Shown here in pieces: positions 1 to 8,219 of a stretch of 8,720 nt of DNA. The stretch's first letter is position 1. Each line of letters begins with the position of its first letter. Source of the DNA: Prasinococcaceae sp. CCMP 1430 (Eukaryota > Plantae > Prasinodermophyta); NCBI GenBank assembly GCA_013416795.1, contig RQSC01000757.1, positions 14,790-23,509 of the forward strand, read 5' to 3'. The notes below the pieces were generated by a model. The model had not been told where the DNA came from. It saw only the letters and a program-made list of their open reading frames with translations, and did no database searches. Position numbers and translations under genes: made by a program.

Positions 1-80
1 CGCGCGCGCGGGCGCCCGCCCGCGCGCCGGGCTGCGCTCCAGCGCGCTGACGCGCTCGCGCACGCCCCTGTCGCTCGCAG
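1..80 (+). other. 3' part of a spliceosomal intron of the CRAL-TRIO gene (branch-like CTGAC 47-51, acceptor CAG 78-80)
   Basis: CG-rich low-complexity sequence ending CTGAC...GCCCCTG...CGCAG; coding-like codons with a recognisable domain begin immediately at 81. Confidence 0.75.
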
Positions 81-348
81 GCGTCAAGGCCTGCAAGATC
101 CTCGCCAAGTATTACTGCGAGCGGCTGGGCCTCGGCGTGATCGTGGAGGCGCCCAAGCTGTTCAGCGGTCTGTGGCGCGTGATGGAGCCCATGCTGGACC
201 CGGTGACGAAGGCCAAGGTGGCGTTCGCGCCCGGGCCCGACCGTAAGGGCCAGCCGGGAAAGAAGTCGGCCCGCCTCCTCCAGACGCTGCAGAGGTTCTT
301 CGACGACGAGATGTGCGACTGGGTCATGGAGGAGATGCGGCAAAACAG
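81..348 (+). CDS. Internal exon of a CRAL-TRIO (Sec14-like) lipid-binding/transfer protein; upstream exons lie outside the window
   Basis: Translates as (G)VKACKILAKYYCERLGLGVIVEAPKLFSGLWRVMEPMLDPVTKAKVAF...FFDDEMCDWVMEEMRQN(R), matching the CRAL-TRIO pattern YPERL...IVNAP..F...W...KP.LDP.T..K. It ends at a donor-like CAG|GTACGC (349). The ORF-track extension to 760 is the antisense shadow of RABL6. Confidence 0.85.
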
Positions 349-355
349 GTACGCG

Positions 356-376
356 CCCTCCCCTCCCCTCCCTCCT
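356..376 (+). repeat. Imperfect (CCCT/CCCCT)n pyrimidine microsatellite just inside the intron 5' end
   Basis: ccctcccctcccctccctcc read directly from the sequence. Confidence 0.8.
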
Positions 377-387
377 TCGGCACGCGG

Positions 388-2235
388 TCAGAAGTCGCAG
401 CTGTATCCCTCGGGGGGGCTGTGCACCTGCGCCCCCGCCGCTCCCGACCCTTGCGCCGCCCCAGTGTCCCTCTCCCGCCTTCGCCGCTCCCGCCGCTCCT
501 TGCGCTGCCTCCGCTCCTCAGGGGTCGCCTCCTCGGCGCTCTTGCGGGGCCTGTGGCTCCCGCGCCTCCTCCTGTCCCTCTTGTCCCGTCGCGGCGAGGT
601 GGGCGACGCAGGCGGGCCGGCGGCGATCGCCGCCTCCATGTCCGCCACTCCCGCCGCCAGCATCGCCGCAACGTCGACGCGGGCGCCAGCCTCACTTCCC
701 TCGGGCCCCGCGCCGGCCGCCTCCTCCGTCTCGCGGTCCGAAGATGCGGCTCCGGCGTGAAACGGCCCGTCCGCCGCCGGTGGCGTGCCGGCGTCGCCGG
801 CGTCCACCACCCCGTCCTCAGCGCGGCCGCCCGTGCCACCCCCTGCTGCGGCGTCCCCGGTCTCCTCGCCATCCGTCGTCGGCTCTTTCGGATCGCCCCG
901 ATTGGTCTGCGGAGCTGCGGGCCGCGCATCGGCGTCGGCCCCCTCCCCGCTCGCCGCACTGCCGCCGGCGGGAGCAGCGGCCGCAGCGGCGGCCGCAGCG
1001 GCCGCAGGCACGGTGTCGTCGCCCTCGCTGTCGCTGTAGAAGCCCGCGACGGCCGCCTTTGCGTCGGCGTCGTCCCCGAGCGCGATGGCCGCCGCCGCGG
1101 CGGCGGCGAGCGCCCCGACGGGCTGGGATCCCGCGCGTATCGCCGCTTTGTGGTCGACGAACGTTCCGGCGAGATCGCGCTCCGGCGAGCTGCCAAGCCC
1201 GCGCGTGCGCGCGGCGATCGCGTGCTCGGGCGGCGGCGCGAGCGGGGGGGAGGCGGATGCGGGAGACGCGGTGGCATGCCTCGTCCTGGGCACGTACACC
1301 GCGACCACGCACTCGTCGAGCTCCGCACGTGCGCGCGCCGCGCGCTCGGAGGCAGCACGCGCCTCCTCCTCAGCGCGCCGTCGGCGCTGCTCCTCGGCGT
1401 GCACCCGCAGAGCGGCGTGCACGCCCTTCAGGCCGAAGCAATCGCCGGCGCTCACCTCTAGTACCACCGTCGCGTGCAGCGCGCCGCGGGTGGAGTCGGC
1501 CACCTCGGCCGCGGTGCGCGCGCGCGCGGCGAGCGCGCCGGCGTCCGCCGGCGGCCACGCGTCGCGCATCGAGGCGATGAGGTAGCACCGCGCGCTCGCG
1601 GACATTCGGGAGAGCTCGCCGCGCGCGAAGGAGACGCTCGTCGGCTCTCGGGGATCGCACAGCATCACGACAGCGTCGCATGAGGCGTAGGTCGCGTCGC
1701 GAGCCAGCTCGGGCGGGATGCGCGGCCCCCGGCCGGCCTTCTTGGGGTCGACGCGGGTGCCGGCGTCGTGCGCGGGGACCTCCAGCAGCTGCACGCAGGT
1801 CAGCACGGCGCCGCCCGAGCTCGACGCGCCCGCCGCCGCCTCACCTCCGGCGACCGCGCTCGAGCGCAGCGTGATGACGTGGCTCTGCACCTGCTCGGTC
1901 GGCGCGTATCGCGCGGGCGGGTCGGGGACGCGCCCGCACAGGCGCGCGAGCAGCGCCGACTTGCCGGTGCGCGCGGCGCCGCCGATGGCCACGCGAACCT
2001 CGGGAACCATCGCATGCCGCGCGCGCGCGTCCTGCGAAGGCGGCGGCGGCACCGCCGCCGCCGTCGGATGGCCGCGCAGCTGCCTGGGCTGCTGGTGCTG
2101 GTACTGTTGCTGTTGCTGTTGCTGTTGCTGCTGTTGTTGCTGCTTCTGCTGCTGCTGCTTCTGCTGCGCGTTGGCCGGCCGCTGGTGCTGCTGCGGCGCG
2201 CCGCTGAAGACGCCGCGTCCGAGGGCGCTCTTCAT
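388..2235 (-). CDS. RABL6: Rab-like GTPase of the RABL6 (RBEL1/PARF/C9orf86) type, ~615 aa, apparently intronless
   Basis: ATG at 2235 (MKSALGR, cf. human MFSALKK). Colinear blocks resemble recalled human RABL6: GGAARTGKSALLARLCG/RGDRNTGKTALWHRLQG, YAPTEQVQ/YIPTQEIQ, YASCDAVVMLCD/YKNCNGVVMMFD, LIASMRD/VLGNYRD, DCFGLKGVH/NSFGLKYLH. These are followed by a coiled coil, VAGFYSD/VAGFQDD, an acidic low-complexity region and a basic ERRRRRE tail. Stop TGA at 388-390. Confidence 0.85.
   Translation of the reverse strand: MKSALGRGVFSGAPQQHQRPANAQQKQQQQKQQQQQQQQQQQQQYQHQQPRQLRGHPTAAAVPPPPSQDARARHAMVPEVRVAIGGAARTGKSALLARLCGRVPDPPARYAPTEQVQSHVITLRSSAVAGGEAAAGASSSGGAVLTCVQLLEVPAHDAGTRVDPKKAGRGPRIPPELARDATYASCDAVVMLCDPREPTSVSFARGELSRMSASARCYLIASMRDAWPPADAGALAARARTAAEVADSTRGALHATVVLEVSAGDCFGLKGVHAALRVHAEEQRRRRAEEEARAASERAARARAELDECVVAVYVPRTRHATASPASASPPLAPPPEHAIAARTRGLGSSPERDLAGTFVDHKAAIRAGSQPVGALAAAAAAAIALGDDADAKAAVAGFYSDSEGDDTVPAAAAAAAAAAAPAGGSAASGEGADADARPAAPQTNRGDPKEPTTDGEETGDAAAGGGTGGRAEDGVVDAGDAGTPPAADGPFHAGAASSDRETEEAAGAGPEGSEAGARVDVAAMLAAGVADMEAAIAAGPPASPTSPRRDKRDRRRRGSHRPRKSAEEATPEERRQRKERRERRRRERDTGAAQGSGAAGAQVHSPPEGYSCDF
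2104..2166 (-). repeat. CAG/CAA polyglutamine tract (~19 Gln with 2 Lys) in the RABL6 N-terminal extension
   Basis: Plus strand shows ctgttg/ctgctg/cttctg arrays, translating as QQKQQQQKQQQQQQQQQQQQQ. Confidence 0.9.
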
Positions 2236-2399
2236 CCCGGGCGCCGGCCGCCGGCGCGGGCTCGACTCCGCGGGGCAGACAGGGGAAAGGGGGGGGGGGG
2301 CACAGCAGCGCGCGCGCCGCGCGCGCGCGCGCGCTCTGTGGCGCCGCCGTGCGCTCGCGCTCCCCCTGCTGACCTCGTCGCTCGACCCCCTCCTCGCAC

Positions 2400-2540
2400 A
2401 CAAAACGCTGAAAAGTTTAACCCTGATTGTAAGACCCTAAACCATCGTACCACTTTTCGTTTGATTTTCAATCATTTTTAATGTGTACGGTCACCTGTAA
2501 CCCTAATCACTTGCATATGCGACCATACGTGGGATATTTC
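2400..2540. promoter_or_regulatory. AT-rich island, probable divergent promoter (RABL6 leftward, SRI-like gene rightward), with telomere-like (telo-box) motifs
   Basis: Sharp drop in GC upstream of the RABL6 ATG; TAACCCT 2418-2424, CCCTAAA 2435-2441, TAACCCTAA 2498-2506. Confidence 0.55.
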
Positions 2541-2878
2541 CCTGCGGCGCGCGCGGATCGGGCGCTGAGCTGGCAGATTTGACGCGCGCGCGCCGCCGTC
2601 GCCACTGCGCCGTAGCGACGGGCCCGCGCCGAGGAGCATCCGCCAGCGCGCGGCGCACAGCACCTGTGGCACGCGAGGCCTGCGCGCGAGCGCTGCGCCC
2701 CCACGCACGAGCGTGCGTGCGCTTTCGGCTGAGCCTCGCCATCAAATCGCATCAACCGCGTGTGTCAAGCATTGCGAGCACACGCACAGCACTCGCCCGC
2801 GCACCATCGGCGGCGGCGGCTGGGCTGCGGCGGCAGCGAGCCCGCGGCACATAGGCGGGGGGCACTCGGCGCGCACAG

Positions 2879-3283
2879 CGCGCGCGGGGCGCGACGGCCG
2901 CCGCGGCCGCCGCGGCCGCCGCCGAGCCTGCGCGCCCGCCTGGCTCGTTCGCCGACCCCTTCAGCGAGGACTTCCGCTTCGCCGTGCGCACGCTGGTGAA
3001 GGAGCGCTTGCACATCTTCATGAAGGACCCCGGGCGCGCGCACGTGAGCCGCCGCGAGTACGAAAAGGTGAAGGAGAAGTTCTCGTCGTCGTTCATCGAG
3101 CGCGAGAAACAGCGCCACGCGAAGGAGCGCACGCACGGCGAGGCGTCGCTCATCACGAAGGAGCGCCTGCAGCGACGCGTCAAGGAGTTCGTGGAGAGGT
3201 GCGTCTACAAGATGAAGGGCATCAAGGAGCAGCCCAGGGCGCCCGCGCCGGTGCGGCCCGCGACGAACCTCGAGTGGGACTGA
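2879..3283 (+). CDS. Small SRI-like (Set2-Rpb1-interacting) domain coding segment; 5' end unresolved
   Basis: EDFRFAVRTLVKERLHIFMKDPGRAHVSRREYEKVKEKFSSSFIEREKQR...LQRRVKEFVERCVYKM has strong GC3 bias and fits the three-helix SRI pattern (F...V...L..Y / I.S.EDYK...RK.T..I.EKE / K.K.K.YV). In-frame TAG at 2852-2854; candidate acceptor CAG at 2876-2878; first in-frame ATG only at 3020; stop TGA 3281-3283. Confidence 0.55.
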   Translation, partial: RARGATAAAAAAAAAEPARPPGSFADPFSEDFRFAVRTLVKERLHIFMKDPGRAHVSRREYEKVKEKFSSSFIEREKQRHAKERTHGEASLITKERLQRRVKEFVERCVYKMKGIKEQPRAPAPVRPATNLEWD

Positions 3284-3819
3284 CGAGCGAGCACGCCCGA
3301 GCGCGGCGGGGAGAGAAAGCGAAAGCGGCGGGCGTTGAGCGGGGCGGAGGGAGCCGCCCGGCGCCCGGCCCGCGCGCGCGCGACCAGCCGAGCGCCGCGC
3401 GGCTCGATGTATCATATATGGCATAACGCCACGCAGGTTTGTACAGCCGCACGAGCGCCGCCACGCCGCGGAGGGGAGGAGGAGGTCGGGGCGCAGCGCG
3501 CGGCGCCCCCTCACTGCTGTCCGCCAGCGCCTGACGCTGGGGTTGGGGTTGGGAATGCTTAGACTACTGTGTGTGTGTTTGCCGCGAGGGAGCGCTCTGC
3601 GAGCGGGCGCCCCCGCGACCGGCTGGCCGTAACAGAAAACTGAAAACGGTGGCGCCCGCCCGGCCGGCGCACCCGCGCGCCCCGACGGACCGCCACGCGT
3701 GGGACCCTCCGAGGTGGTGGAGTGGTGGGGCGGTGGTGCAGTTCGAGGCCGGCGCCAGGGAGGGCCGCGGCGCCAGAGCGCGCCTCGGAGGCGGGGAGGG
3801 GTCTGCAAGGGGGTGGGGT

Positions 3820-3859
3820 GCGGTGGCGGTGGCGGTGGCGGTGGCGGTGGCGGTGGCGG
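3820..3859 (+). repeat. (GCGGTG)6 hexamer microsatellite at the left edge of the gap
   Basis: Six exact units at 3820-3855 plus a partial unit. Confidence 0.9.
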
Positions 3860-3892
3860 GGGTCGCGTCGCTCGCGCGCGCTCGCGCGACGC

Positions 3893-4796
3893 NNNNNNNN
3901 NNNNNNNNNNNNNNNNNNNNNNNNNNNNNNNNNNNNNNNNNNNNNNNNNNNNNNNNNNNNNNNNNNNNNNNNNNNNNNNNNNNNNNNNNNNNNNNNNNNN
4001 NNNNNNNNNNNNNNNNNNNNNNNNNNNNNNNNNNNNNNNNNNNNNNNNNNNNNNNNNNNNNNNNNNNNNNNNNNNNNNNNNNNNNNNNNNNNNNNNNNNN
4101 NNNNNNNNNNNNNNNNNNNNNNNNNNNNNNNNNNNNNNNNNNNNNNNNNNNNNNNNNNNNNNNNNNNNNNNNNNNNNNNNNNNNNNNNNNNNNNNNNNNN
4201 NNNNNNNNNNNNNNNNNNNNNNNNNNNNNNNNNNNNNNNNNNNNNNNNNNNNNNNNNNNNNNNNNNNNNNNNNNNNNNNNNNNNNNNNNNNNNNNNNNNN
4301 NNNNNNNNNNNNNNNNNNNNNNNNNNNNNNNNNNNNNNNNNNNNNNNNNNNNNNNNNNNNNNNNNNNNNNNNNNNNNNNNNNNNNNNNNNNNNNNNNNNN
4401 NNNNNNNNNNNNNNNNNNNNNNNNNNNNNNNNNNNNNNNNNNNNNNNNNNNNNNNNNNNNNNNNNNNNNNNNNNNNNNNNNNNNNNNNNNNNNNNNNNNN
4501 NNNNNNNNNNNNNNNNNNNNNNNNNNNNNNNNNNNNNNNNNNNNNNNNNNNNNNNNNNNNNNNNNNNNNNNNNNNNNNNNNNNNNNNNNNNNNNNNNNNN
4601 NNNNNNNNNNNNNNNNNNNNNNNNNNNNNNNNNNNNNNNNNNNNNNNNNNNNNNNNNNNNNNNNNNNNNNNNNNNNNNNNNNNNNNNNNNNNNNNNNNNN
4701 NNNNNNNNNNNNNNNNNNNNNNNNNNNNNNNNNNNNNNNNNNNNNNNNNNNNNNNNNNNNNNNNNNNNNNNNNNNNNNNNNNNNNNNNNNNNNNNN
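3893..4796. other. Assembly gap (904 N)
   Basis: Run of N read directly; the true size is unknown. Confidence 1.
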
Positions 4797-4819
4797 TCCC
4801 TCCCTCCCTCCCTCCCTCC
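4797..4819 (+). repeat. (TCCC)n microsatellite at the right edge of the gap
   Basis: tccctccctccctccctccctcc, truncated by the gap. Confidence 0.9.
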
Positions 4820-4866
4820 GCCGCGCGTCTGACGCGCGCGCGGCGCGCCCCTGCCGACGTGGCAAG

Positions 4867-5197
4867 GCTCAAGGGCAAGGACGTCGACGACAAGTGCTGG
4901 CAGTGGGCGGACGCGTGGGCCGGGGGCACCCTGCGAGCGTGCGAGTCCACGCGCGACATCGGCGGGCGGTGGCAGCGCGGCACGCCCGGCTACTTTTCGG
5001 GGTCCCTGCCGCCCAGCTGGAGCACGCGTGGGACGCCCGGGCCCATGCACGGCGAGCCGCACGACGTCCGGGGGCCGCCTAGCTTCGTGCGCGGCCTGAA
5101 GCGCGGGGTGTGCGACGTCGCGCCGTTGTACTGCCACCGGCTCGCGGCGTGGCAAGACGAGGTCTTCTACGACGCGCGCGCTGAGCTGGACGAGTGA
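4867..5197 (+). CDS. Terminal exon, most likely the C-terminus of the CRAL-TRIO protein, ending in an FFAT-like motif
   Basis: Preceded by CTGAC and an AAG acceptor; GC3-biased frame LKGKDVDDKCWQWADAW...HGEPHDVRGPPSFVRGL...DEVFYDARAELDE*. Its phase complements the donor at 349. HDVRGPPSFV resembles the HDPRGCPSYV motif I recall following F-D-D-E-x-x-x-W-L-x-E-E-x-R-x-N in one CRAL-TRIO subfamily (recall only, not searched). Confidence 0.65.
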
Positions 5198-5465
5198 CGC
5201 GCGCGCGCTCCCGCCCATGCTGGCGCGGGCGCCTCCTCACTCCGGCGTCGCCCGCCCCCCGCGCCGCATCGTACAATAGCACGCATTCAACGCATTCGCA
5301 AGAGAGGACGCCGACGGCGCGCGCGGCAGCCGCCGCGACCGTCGTCGTTCACTCACGGACAGCGTCCTCGTCGTTATTAGCGCGCGGCGCCGCAGGCGCC
5401 GCGCGCGCGCGCGCGCCCCGCCCGGCGGCGCTCGATCGGGGTCCTCCGCCTCGCGAGCGACTCGC

Positions 5466-5858: not shown

Positions 5859-5879
5859 CTGGTCTGCGCGGCCGTTTCA

Positions 5880-6137
5880 CCCCAAGTTTTGGCGGGAAGA
5901 TCCAAACCTCAACCTCGCGCGCCGCTCGGCGCACGCCTTCGACACTAATGACAAAAAAAATAAAAGCGGCGTTTTTCGGTGGCTGGATCTCATATCAATT
6001 CGAATGCGCGCAGCCGCATTTTCTCCCGCATTTTCTCCCAAACAATTCCGAGTTAAATCACTTTTTCACATGAGCTTTGATCTAGCTTAAGGCATAGTGT
6101 TCGAGAGGCGATTTCAAACCCTACAAAGTGACTCCAN
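5880..6137. promoter_or_regulatory. AT-rich island with E2F-like, CHR-like and telo-box-like motifs
   Basis: TTTTGGCGGGAA 5887-5898 (fits WTTSSCSS); (CCGCATTTTCTC)2 6014-6037; TTCAAA 6113-6118 overlapping AAACCCTA 6116-6123. Confidence 0.45.
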
Positions 6138-6749
6138 GAGTATGGCGGTCGCGACACTGTTTTGGTACAGCACGCGCTCCATGCCCGTCGTCGCCGCCGC
6201 CGCCGCCTGGATCGCCTCCCCGACGGCCCTGGCGGCGGCGTGCGCGTGCGCCTCCCGCACGGCCGCCGCGCGGGCGTCCCTCTCGAACGCCCGGTCCCTC
6301 TCCCAGCTGCCGAAGAACTCCCGCTCCCACGCGCGCTCGCGCGCCTTGGTCAGGGAGCTGTGGTGCCCGTCGCCGCCCTCGCGCCTGGCGCGCGCGTCGG
6401 CCATGGCGACGATCGTCGAGTCCCAGTGCGCCCAGTACTGCTCCTCGCGCCAGTCCTCCCCGAAGAGCTCGGCGGCCTCGCCCTCCGTGATGACCTCGCC
6501 TTCGTCGCCGGGGAAGCGCACGCGCCGCCCGTTGATAACGAAGGGCAGCTTCTGCGGGTCGGTGGGCTCGCCGGTGCCGAAGAAGCGCGCGCGCTCCGCG
6601 GGCGTGCGCGCGCCGTCGCCGGGCAGCCACAGGCCGAAGCGCTCGTGGGGGCCCAGCTCGCCGGCGAGCTCGCGCTCGAAGGCGGCCAGCGCGTCCGCCG
6701 AGGTCATGGTGCCCTCGGGGCCGTACGCGCCGGGCAGCGGGTCGAGCAT
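6114..6749 (-). CDS. Hypothetical protein of unknown function, head-to-head with ORC2; both ends uncertain (coding-like up to ~6834; may splice to 5466-5858)
   Basis: GC3-biased, natural-looking frame MLDPLPGAYGPEG...PFVINGRRVRFPGDEGEVITEGEAAELFGEDWREEQYWAHWD...AWEREFFGSWERDRAFERDA. Nearest ATG at 6749; stop TGA 6114-6116 lies beyond the N at 6137. Confidence 0.65.
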   Translation of the reverse strand: MLDPLPGAYGPEGTMTSADALAAFERELAGELGPHERFGLWLPGDGARTPAERARFFGTGEPTDPQKLPFVINGRRVRFPGDEGEVITEGEAAELFGEDWREEQYWAHWDSTIVAMADARARREGGDGHHSSLTKARERAWEREFFGSWERDRAFERDARAAAVREAHAHAAARAVGEAIQAAAAATTGMERVLYQNSVATAILXESLCRV

Positions 6750-6893: not shown

Positions 6894-8219
6894 ATGGAAA
6901 GGGGCACCGGCACGGCGTGTGCACCTGGCACCGACGAAGCCGAACAGGAGGAGGAGGAGGAGGAGGGTGGGAATGGCCGCGCGTACATCGAAGCCACGCG
7001 CAAGCAGGGCGCGTCCGGCAGCACGGCCAAGGGAAGCAAGGGCGCCAAGGGCGCCAAGGGCGCCGCGCGCACCAAGACGAACAACCGCGCCGCGAGCGCC
7101 CCACTGAATGAGTCGTTGCTGGCGGACGACGCGGCGGTGGCAGCAGCGCTCGCGACGCTTCCCGACAAGCACGCGGCCGCGCGCGCAGAGCTTTTCGAGG
7201 TGTACGAGCACGAGTCGGCGCAATGGGCACTGCGGCTGCGCGCAGGGAGCTCGCTGCTCTTCCACGGTTTCGGCTCCAAGCGCAAGCTTCTGGATGAGTT
7301 CGTCGCGCGCTCGTGCTCTGACGGCAGCGTGCTGGAAGTCGACGGCTTCGAGCAGGCGCTCACGGCGCGTGACGTGCTGCGCGCGGCCGCCACGATCGCG
7401 CGCGAGCACGCGGCGGCGGTGGCCAACGCCAACGCCGCCACGGGCTCGGCTGTAGACGCCGAGGGCGTGGCCGTGGGCGCGGCGATTAGTGGGATGTCCA
7501 ATGCGGAGCTCTGCGCGGTGGTGCGCGCCGCCATGCATCTGCCGGGAGTCGATCCGCGCGCCGAGGAGAGCGGGTCCTCGGTGCCCATGCCTCCCCTGTA
7601 CCTGGTGGTGCACTCGATCGACGGCCCCAGCCTGCGGAGCGCCGAGGCGCAAGCGCAGTTGGCCGAACTTGCCGCATGCACGCACGTGCGCGTGGTGGCC
7701 AGTGTCGACCACCTGAATGCCGCGCTGCTGTGGGATCGCGAGGCGCTCGGGCGCTTTCGCTGGAGCTGGATCGAGGCGCCCACGTGGGCTCCATATACCT
7801 CCGAGGCGCGCAGCTTCGCGCCGCTGGTGGCGCCCCGCGCCGAGGGTCGCCGCGCGCAGGGTGCACTGCAGGTGCTGCAGTCGCTCACGCCCAACGCGCG
7901 GGGCATCTTCCGCATGCTCATCGACCGCTGCAACGCGCAGGCCCAGGCGGCCGCAGCGGCAGGCGGCCGCGGCGGCGGCGCCATTGGCATCAGCTTCCAC
8001 GCGCTCTACGAGGCCTGCCGCGAGCGCTTCCTGTGCTCGAGCCAGGCCACGCTCAAGAGTGTGCTCACCGAGTTCGCCGACCACGAGCTGGTGCGCGAAC
8101 GGCGCACAGCAGGCACGGGCGAGCGCACCGGGGGCGAGCGCGGCGGCGGTGACCTCATCCAGGTGGCGTTGCCCAAGGCGGCGCTCAGCTCGGTGCTTGA
8201 GGCCATGGACGCTGCCTGA
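6894..8219 (+). CDS. ORC2: Origin recognition complex subunit 2, ~441 aa, apparently intronless
   Basis: ORC2 motifs QW...L..G.SLLFHGFGSKRKLLDEF, LYLVVHSIDGPSLR, VRVVASVDHLNAALLWD, RFRWSWIEAPTWAPY..E, VLQSLTPNARGIF and the winged-helix F..LY..CRERFL.SS..TL...LTEF.DHELV. First suitable ATG at 6894; stop TGA 8217-8219. Confidence 0.95.
   Translation: MERGTGTACAPGTDEAEQEEEEEEGGNGRAYIEATRKQGASGSTAKGSKGAKGAKGAARTKTNNRAASAPLNESLLADDAAVAAALATLPDKHAAARAELFEVYEHESAQWALRLRAGSSLLFHGFGSKRKLLDEFVARSCSDGSVLEVDGFEQALTARDVLRAAATIAREHAAAVANANAATGSAVDAEGVAVGAAISGMSNAELCAVVRAAMHLPGVDPRAEESGSSVPMPPLYLVVHSIDGPSLRSAEAQAQLAELAACTHVRVVASVDHLNAALLWDREALGRFRWSWIEAPTWAPYTSEARSFAPLVAPRAEGRRAQGALQVLQSLTPNARGIFRMLIDRCNAQAQAAAAAGGRGGGAIGISFHALYEACRERFLCSSQATLKSVLTEFADHELVRERRTAGTGERTGGERGGGDLIQVALPKAALSSVLEAMDAA

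Follow-up and report, generated by a model that had tools for sequence, protein, structure and literature searches.

Exons and product of the CRAL-TRIO gene

The window, the whole stretch of 8,720 nucleotides of Prasinococcaceae sp. CCMP 1430 DNA analysed here, carries two separated exons of a CRAL-TRIO gene on its plus strand, between which are written a small-GTPase-like gene on the minus strand, the last part of a Set2-type coding sequence on the plus strand and an assembly gap. Positions 1-80 (+) form the 3' part of intron 1, which ends in ..TCGCAG and equals 4096-4175 of the metagenome contig L006. Exon 2 (81-348, +), supported by Pfam and by RNA contigs, encodes the C-terminal half of the CRAL_TRIO domain; searched alone, it matches profile positions 85-133 of 153 of PF00650 (E 1.8e-10, 41.2 bits) and thus belongs to the family by its gathering cut-off of 22.6 bits. 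Exon 1, as found in L006, scores 21.4 bits alone, slightly below this cut-off, and the homologue P0002 scores 78.7 bits.

Exon 2 ends at AG|GTACGC, as the initial annotation had proposed, and is followed by the 5' end of the last intron (349-375, +) with its GT donor and a CCCT tract. The 3' part of this intron (4797-4866, +) contains (TCCC)n at 4797-4819, CTGAC at 4829-4833 and the acceptor AG at 4865-4866. As also proposed, the frame is picked up again at 4867, after ..GGCAAG, by the last exon (4867-5197, +), which encodes a conserved C-terminal extension, ends with the stop codon at 5195-5197 and is supported by RNA contigs and by homology to P0002. The joined reading, ..EEMRQNR|LKGKDVDDKCWQW.., holds in the sequence; the protein end, placed directly after ..DEVFYDA, had to be corrected to ..DEVFYDARAELDE followed by the stop.

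The splice between 348 and 4867, which had been suggested as a check, is carried by contigs of two transcriptome runs (X1 record 2 and X2 record 8). The contigs read as 346|4865, which equals 348|4867 because AG recurs on both sides of the junction. Another RNA contig (X1 record 1) displays an exon further upstream, spliced at 80/81. A single continuous hit over the junction, the other check named in advance, was obtained with P0002, a 379-aa homologue that spans both halves. The spliced protein can be aligned to it over its whole length, and the tail exon matches its residues 279-373 with an E of 1.1e-14. With RNA contigs at the exact proposed junction and both halves present in one homologue, 81-348 and 4867-5197 are parts of one spliced CRAL-TRIO gene. 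The gene of P0002, from a related organism, is devoid of introns.

The extension comprises ~110 aa with the pattern ..KCWQW..HD[VP]RGPPSFV..VF[YH]DA. A Pfam search of the tail exon found no family, and a search of 1.84 billion representatives at E<1e-10 returned two clusters only, one of which (P0001) is the tail of the window called alone. The extension appears to be lineage-restricted, a conserved tail of rare occurrence.

Genes written between the exons

Segment 376-2894 (-), which comprises the small-GTPase-like gene and its upstream region, belongs to another locus, as evident from metagenome contigs L007 and L010 and from record 17 of the DNA run X6. Its coding sequence (388-2235, -) is a complete ORF of 615 aa that has a visible P-loop, GxxxxGKS, and a lengthy tail of low complexity. 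Pfam returned no family for this ORF, and a PDB sequence search with the G-domain region gave nothing usable. Its closest protein-atlas neighbours are all Ras/Arf/Roc proteins, with scores of 0.85-0.91 that serve as a lead only, and the Ras/Arf-like reading taken from these features is likewise a lead.

L007 and L010 match the window from 2603 to 356 and then continue into a 3' UTR of their own (..GGGGGTAATAAATCG..) and a convergent gene, with no CRAL exon; the small-GTPase-like gene thus has its own AT-rich 3' end on these contigs. The Tara samples which yielded them also give the CRAL contigs L009 and L006. X6 record 17, a contig of the organism's own DNA almost identical to the window, covers 356-2081 followed by 262 unlike letters; its extent is the same as that of L007, and it has the same break and the other 3' neighbour. 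The initial annotation had described this gene as RABL6-like and had taken it for an antisense gene nested in the CRAL-TRIO intron, a position contradicted by the other 3' neighbour that two independent contigs and the organism's DNA contig give it. Position 2603 was considered as a breakpoint and rejected, as it is simply where L007 and L010 stop; their final stretch seems homologous apart from indels. The X6 contigs of the small-GTPase-like locus are ~5 times shallower than its supposed neighbours, a depth that was rejected as a copy-number measure at this locus for being too noisy.

The second gene, formerly described as an SRI-like segment nested on the same strand, is the last part of an AWS+SET (Set2-type) coding sequence (2895-3283, +; stop codon 3281-3283). 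It begins with a (GCC)n tract (2895-2924, +) encoding poly-Ala. The 917-aa ORF of L006 bears SET (E 1.1e-25) and AWS (E 1e-13) and ends at the very stop of the window; P0015 and P0016 combine precomputed SET and AWS with the C-terminus of the window segment, which in P0016 (EukProt PRCOL_00006742) is identical to that of the window. PRCOL_00006742 suggests that the window comes from Prasinoderma coloniale, of which strain CCMP 1413 has a long-read chromosome assembly (PMC7455551), or from a very near species. AWS and SET are found outside the window, in all three proteins, and a separate same-strand SRI-like gene was rejected. RNA contigs cover 2911-3363. The 3' UTR and spacer (3284-3892, +), with (GGTGGC)n at 3812-3859 at its end, are colinear with L006 and L009, both of which show the Set2-type gene in its true place, upstream of the CRAL-TRIO gene; only its last part has entered the supposed intron. 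A single-sequence structure model of the segment has three helices. No SRI domain was matched in Pfam, the PDB sequence search or Foldseek, the latter giving only E>4 for the three-helix model against the PDB.

As written, the window does place a complete minus-strand ORF and a plus-strand ORF with its end at 3283 between the CRAL-TRIO exons; what does not follow is that 349-4866 is one continuous intron.

Order of the locus and origin of the long intron

The order of the locus was compared with four metagenome contigs (L006, L009, L011 and L012) from four Tara samples, with 98-99% identity to the window. These contigs represent other strains (1-3% divergent) and short-read assemblies which may themselves be chimeric at repeats. 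In all four, window 1/3-375 stands immediately ahead of window 4797/8-5874, and the intron between exon 2 and the tail exon is 88-97 nt long, with GT..AG ends and a (CCCT)n tract. This short distance speaks against the earlier model of a 4.5-kb intron with two nested genes. In three 456-aa ORFs (P0007, P0010 and P0013), the frame stays open from exon 2 across the short intron and on into the tail. In L006 and L009, the Set2-type 3' end (window 2895-3892) is followed by ~0.75 kb, in which CRAL-TRIO exon 1 and the first part of intron 1 lie, and then by window 1-375. The join 375/376 is absent from every other data set examined; JGI metagenome contigs displayed neither the join of exon 2 to the GTPase flank nor the short intron, and they are uninformative either way, the species being absent there.

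The assembly gap (3893-4796, 904 N) has the same flanks in L006 and L009, (GGTGGC)n on one side and (TCCC)n on the other, which are separated by 1120 nt in L006 (3342-4461) and 1138 nt in L009 (993-2131). The gap is expected to contain ~1.12 kb, namely the promoter, the first two CRAL-TRIO exons with intron 1 between them, and the first part of the last intron. The ~1.12 kb found at this place in the other assemblies includes a copy of window 1-375, so the RNA junction is expected whether the intron is long or short. The initial annotation had named other true neighbours and a further CRAL-TRIO copy inside the gap as evidence against its own model; the independent assemblies show both.

The X6 contigs differ from the window by 0-3 mismatches; the observations on them rest on contigs among the matches listed. 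Record 16 (1121 nt) is the piece expected in the gap: it carries window 1-375 with 736 nt upstream and 10 unlike letters after it. The X6 contigs depart from the window order at 356-375. Records 16, 20 and 22 are alike in depth (144, 154 and 130 for window 1-375, 2895-3807 and the tail exon, respectively), so there is no sign of a doubled window 1-375. The window leaves the independent order at two tracts, CCCT (356-375), inside which lies a tandem repeat (356-372), and (GCC)n (2895-2924). No inverted repeats and no target-site duplication were found at 5875-6183.

These observations make it very probable that the 4.5-kb gene-filled intron is an assembly misjoin and that only a short intron separates the two CRAL-TRIO exons, which lie ~90 bases apart in the independent assemblies. 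The order in the window is not biologically coherent, as it costs the small-GTPase-like gene the AT-rich 3' end that other genes here have, and the Set2 C-terminus its AWS+SET part. We infer that the strain of the window has the contig order of the other assemblies, which would make its present order an error and not a real rearrangement. The real gene is predicted to be compact, with three exons and a Sec14/CRAL-TRIO lipid-binding product of ~389 aa. Its last intron would be a short one with a (CCCT)n microsatellite; that of wild relatives has 88-97 nt, and the one in the window's strain is probably a little longer. A microsatellite-bounded piece of ~1.1 kb, made up of exons 1 and 2 and the intron between them, would belong in the gap at 3893-4796, but its CCCT end was probably misjoined to C/T-rich sequence flanking the 3' end of the small-GTPase-like gene, which is unrelated. 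On its other side, this gene was probably misjoined via (GCC)n to the Set2-type 3' end. RNA joining exon 2 to the tail would therefore map across 4.5 kb, giving an apparent intron with two apparent nested genes. Two points against the misjoin are the length of the tract common to both loci, which at ~20 nt is little for a read-overlap assembler to be misled by, and the low depth of the X6 contigs of the small-GTPase-like locus.

A real structural variant, in which the Set2 3' end to CRAL exons 1-2 was duplicated and the small-GTPase-like gene captured between the copies, is unlikely. Exon 2 of the gap would then be spliced over the short intron, leaving window 81-348 a dead duplicate. The window order is indeed a circular permutation of the natural block plus an insert, as given by tandem duplication, and the short tracts at its joins would suit a microhomology-mediated rearrangement; however, the near-identical X6 has equal depth over the three parts and quits the window order at the CCCT tract, and the small-GTPase-like gene would be left without a normal 3' end.

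It is very improbable that the last intron is truly 4.5 kb long, with an antisense small-GTPase-like gene and a small same-strand gene inside and no exon copy in the gap, as initially annotated. The joining of 348|4867 in RNA contigs is compatible with it, but is expected equally from an exon copy in the gap; likewise, the window has no N between 348 and 3892 and RNA covers part of the same-strand segment, but the latter is a Set2-type C-terminus, which would be cut off from its AWS+SET part. The short intron in four independent contigs, the fit of the gap size to exons 1-2 and the failure of X6 to follow the join also oppose this model. Scarcely to be expected is a rearranged haplotype in which >3.5 kb, with the small-GTPase-like gene and a second Set2 3' end, was inserted in (CCCT)n of the last CRAL-TRIO intron. 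The spliceosome of an alga with otherwise short introns would then have to remove a 4.5-kb intron that includes an antisense gene and a polyadenylation region on the sense strand.

The locus thus adds nothing new to gene nesting; what is flagged is a local misassembly that would yield false interleaved models for three genes. A spliced RNA junction over an assembly gap is no evidence of a long intron if the exon may lie in the gap as well.

Comparison with known systems

The SRI domain of Set2 sits at the extreme C-terminus of the protein. As in Set2/SETD2 H3K36 methyltransferases, AWS-SET is accompanied here by the window segment at the extreme C-terminus, the place of SRI, and the three-helix model would suit that domain as well. 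Compared to misjoins at microsatellites and low-complexity tracts, both departures of the window lie at such tracts, CCCT and (GCC)n, and independent short-read contigs stop at the same tracts.

The real gene is of mild interest: its Sec14-like product has a conserved tail, seldom found, with a possible VAP-binding motif at the end. The domain of Sec14/CRAL-TRIO proteins (PF00650) is common to exon 2 and P0002; the window protein differs from this family in carrying the C-terminal extension. FFAT motifs (EFFDAxE) of lipid-transfer proteins bind VAP (PMC8306308), and the CRAL-TRIO protein is likewise a putative lipid-transfer protein. By eye, against the consensus named there, the tail has QDEVFYDARAE in the window and DDDEDVFHDALEA in P0002; it ends in an acidic stretch followed by VFYDA or VFHDA, respectively, whose placement fits F2-x3-D4-A5; position 1, however, is V in these two sequences and E in the consensus. 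The tail may have an FFAT-like, VAP-binding role.

Intronic host/nested gene pairs have been catalogued in mammals (PMC11694760), and the window as written looks alike, with one antisense and one sense gene in an intron. The flanking exons are joined in RNA here, as a host gene would require, a join that an exon copy in the gap explains equally; the nested gene, in contrast, does not lie wholly inside a real intron, as the independent assemblies show an empty intron of 88-97 nt. Of the 'nested' genes, one is a neighbour and the other comes from a different locus.

Splicing and homology of the CRAL-TRIO gene

The G+C content of the window is ~72-78%. This very high value, together with the database name PRCOL_00006742 of a protein discussed below (P0016), suggests Prasinoderma coloniale or something closely related; P. 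coloniale itself has 69.8% G+C in a 25.3-Mb assembly built from long reads (PMC7455551), and the window, given its 904-N gap, probably stems from a different one. The plus strand of 81-348 codes for ..VKACKILAKYYCERLGLG..EEMRQN, which Pfam matches to CRAL_TRIO over the C-terminal half of this domain (PF00650, E 1.8e-10), and its 3' border reads AG|GTACGC. The reading frame from 4867, after ..GGCAAG, gives (R)LKGKDVDDKCWQW..HDVRGPPSFV..DEVFYDARAELDE*; its stop codon occupies 5195-5197 (+). The initial annotation had given this peptide correctly except for its last seven residues, the protein ending in DEVFYDARAELDE*. The 348|4867 junction proposed there is confirmed by RNA contigs: one of 336 nt in run X1 (transcriptome-like, organism A) passes from 119-346 directly to 4865-4969, and one of 339 nt in X2 from 113-346 to 4865-4969. 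As AG is present at both 347-348 and 4865-4866, this 346|4865 join is the same as 348|4867. An X1 record also has an upstream exon spliced on at 80/81, and contigs of the DNA-like run X6 cross both splice sites unspliced. The splice is real.

The tail exon (4867-5197) has only two real relatives among 1.84 billion representatives. One, P0001, is the CRAL-TRIO tail by itself; the other, P0002 (379 aa), combines CRAL_TRIO (residues 105-223) with the tail (residues 279-373), and its coding sequence occurs without introns on five metagenome contigs. The spliced protein (389 aa) derived from L006, the 6.3-kb Tara metagenome scaffold encoding P0001, aligns with P0002 over both junctions in a single alignment (E 2e-112, 49% identity). 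The assignment of both halves to one gene is therefore upheld, as evident from their occurrence in P0002 and from this continuous alignment, and the pairing of 81-348 with 4867-5197 is right. P0002 comes from a related organism (L001-L005) as a single uninterrupted ORF, 49-52% identical, and the CRAL-TRIO gene here has two introns; introns have therefore been gained or lost between the lineages.

Gene order in independent contigs

The comparison contigs outside the window are short-read assemblies of other strains. L006 matches the window in the order 2895-3892 (L006 2368-3341), 1-375 (4096-4472), 4797-5874 (4462-5539) and 6186-6834 (5584-6232). Exon 1 begins with ATG at L006 3489-4059, intron 1 lies at 4060-4175, exon 2 equals window 81-348, and a last intron of 88 nt follows, GTACGCG(CCCT-rich)..CTGAC..GGCAAG. 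L009, L011 and L012, from three other samples, are colinear with L006 and have a last intron of 97 nt, and the 456-aa ORFs P0007, P0010 and P0013 remain open from exon 2 across the short intron to the tail exon. A gene-filled last intron of 4.5 kb is thus contradicted by 88-97 nt in all four contigs. The two lengths differ through (CCCT)n changes; wild strains show length variation in both introns, and in some of them the reading frame continues through intron 1 (L006 versus P0007/P0013).

The equivalents of 3892 and 4797 are 1120 nt (L006) and 1138 nt (L009) apart, as against 904 N in the window (3893-4796). From their place and spacing in these contigs, exon 1, intron 1 and exon 2 naturally belong in the gap. 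X6 record 16 (1121 nt, including 736 nt upstream) covers 1-375, followed by 10 unlike letters, and is the piece fitting the gap.

The minus-strand gene (CDS 388-2235, 615 aa), proposed as a RABL6-like gene nested in the intron, encodes a GTPase-like protein with a P-loop and a long low-complexity tail. It has no match in Pfam or PDB sequence searches; the proteins closest to it in the protein atlas are without exception of Ras/Arf/Roc type, no more than a lead. Two proteins closely related to it, P0006 and P0008, are encoded on the Tara scaffolds L007 and L010, which match 2603-356 and then, instead of reaching the CRAL exon, continue for ~260 nt into ..GGGGGTAATAAATCGATTGTACTGTAC.. and a convergent gene. 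X6 record 17, the organism's own DNA (3 mismatches), covers 2347-356 and likewise leaves the window at 356, with 262 letters unlike it. This continuation into other sequence speaks against nesting. Other genes in the window carry an AT-rich patch 3' of the stop codon, of the kind in ..GGGGGTAATAAATCGATTGTACTGTAC..; the window copy of this gene is without it, and the CRAL exon begins 40 nt past its stop. X6 contigs over 356-2603 have depths of 23-29, ~5 times shallower than others, for which G+C bias offers no clear explanation.

The SRI-like segment, taken earlier for a separate same-strand nested gene, turns out to be the C-terminal end of a Set2-type gene: in L006 it closes a 917-aa ORF with AWS (E 1e-13) and SET (E 1.1e-25), whose stop codon is that of the segment in the window. 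SET and AWS with the same C-terminus are also found in P0015 (667 aa, four contigs) and P0016 (595 aa, EukProt PRCOL_00006742), the shared part of the latter being identical to the window. Upstream of 2895, within (GCC)n, window and L006 are unrelated. No SRI domain was matched in the segment by Pfam, PDB sequence search or Foldseek; a single-sequence model gives three helices. The P0016 model joins ..FFPRP to DFRFAV.. (acceptor ~2968), leaving out a Gln/Ala-rich low-complexity stretch (~2895-2968) that P0015 and L006 keep in frame; the omission reflects either a genuine intron or an artefact of modelling at the repeat. In the spacer downstream (3489-3643; no ORF of note), a contig of the seawater metatranscriptome X3 aligns with 5 differences and 1 gap.

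At 5875-6183, ~310 nt of ~50% G+C replace ~45 nt found in all four Tara contigs. They contain an N (6137) and a 12-nt tandem duplication (6014-6037), and break a minus-strand ORF continuous in L006 (5131-6315, 394 aa). A search for inverted repeats in this segment found none, and no frame-keeping GT..AG is obvious; an insertion, an intron specific to this strain and a further flaw of the assembly are all conceivable. An intronless ORC2 gene (6894-8219, +) follows, with RecA-like ORC2 (E 2.8e-57) and ORC2 winged-helix domains.

Origin of the window order

Two low-complexity tracts, CCCT (356-375) and (GCC)n (2895-2924), mark the points where the window leaves the outside order. Two others, (GGTGGC)n (3812-3859) and (TCCC)n (4797-4819), border the gap, and it is at exactly these tracts that short-read contigs from several data sets stop. 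The tract common to the two loci is only ~20 nt. The simplest reading, and quite probably the right one, is a misassembly, in which the ~1.1-kb exon 1-2 piece would have been attached to the wrong C/T-rich end and the GTPase-like piece to the 3' end of the Set2-type gene via (GCC)n, both misattachments leaving the gap behind. A genuine duplication, in which the gap would hold the working exon, is unlikely, as X6 depths are equal (144, 154 and 130 over 1-375, 2895-3807 and 4829-5400, among the X6 contigs listed). The nested locus as first modelled is highly improbable. Its RNA junction is equally expected if the exon 2 copy sits in the gap; transcripts with exon 2 spliced to the tail would map to 81-348 wherever the true copy sits, and the junction lends no support to a long intron. 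We prefer an assembly error to a true insertion as the explanation and do not regard the nested locus as a real feature.

The CRAL-TRIO product and its C-terminal end

The gene product is predicted to be a lipid-binding protein of the Sec14-like type, with a rare conserved tail whose end consists of an acidic stretch followed by VF[YH]DA. Judged from two sequences, this end resembles the FFAT motif, EFFDAxE, with which lipid-transfer proteins attach to VAP at the endoplasmic reticulum (PMC8306308), and is a candidate FFAT-like motif.
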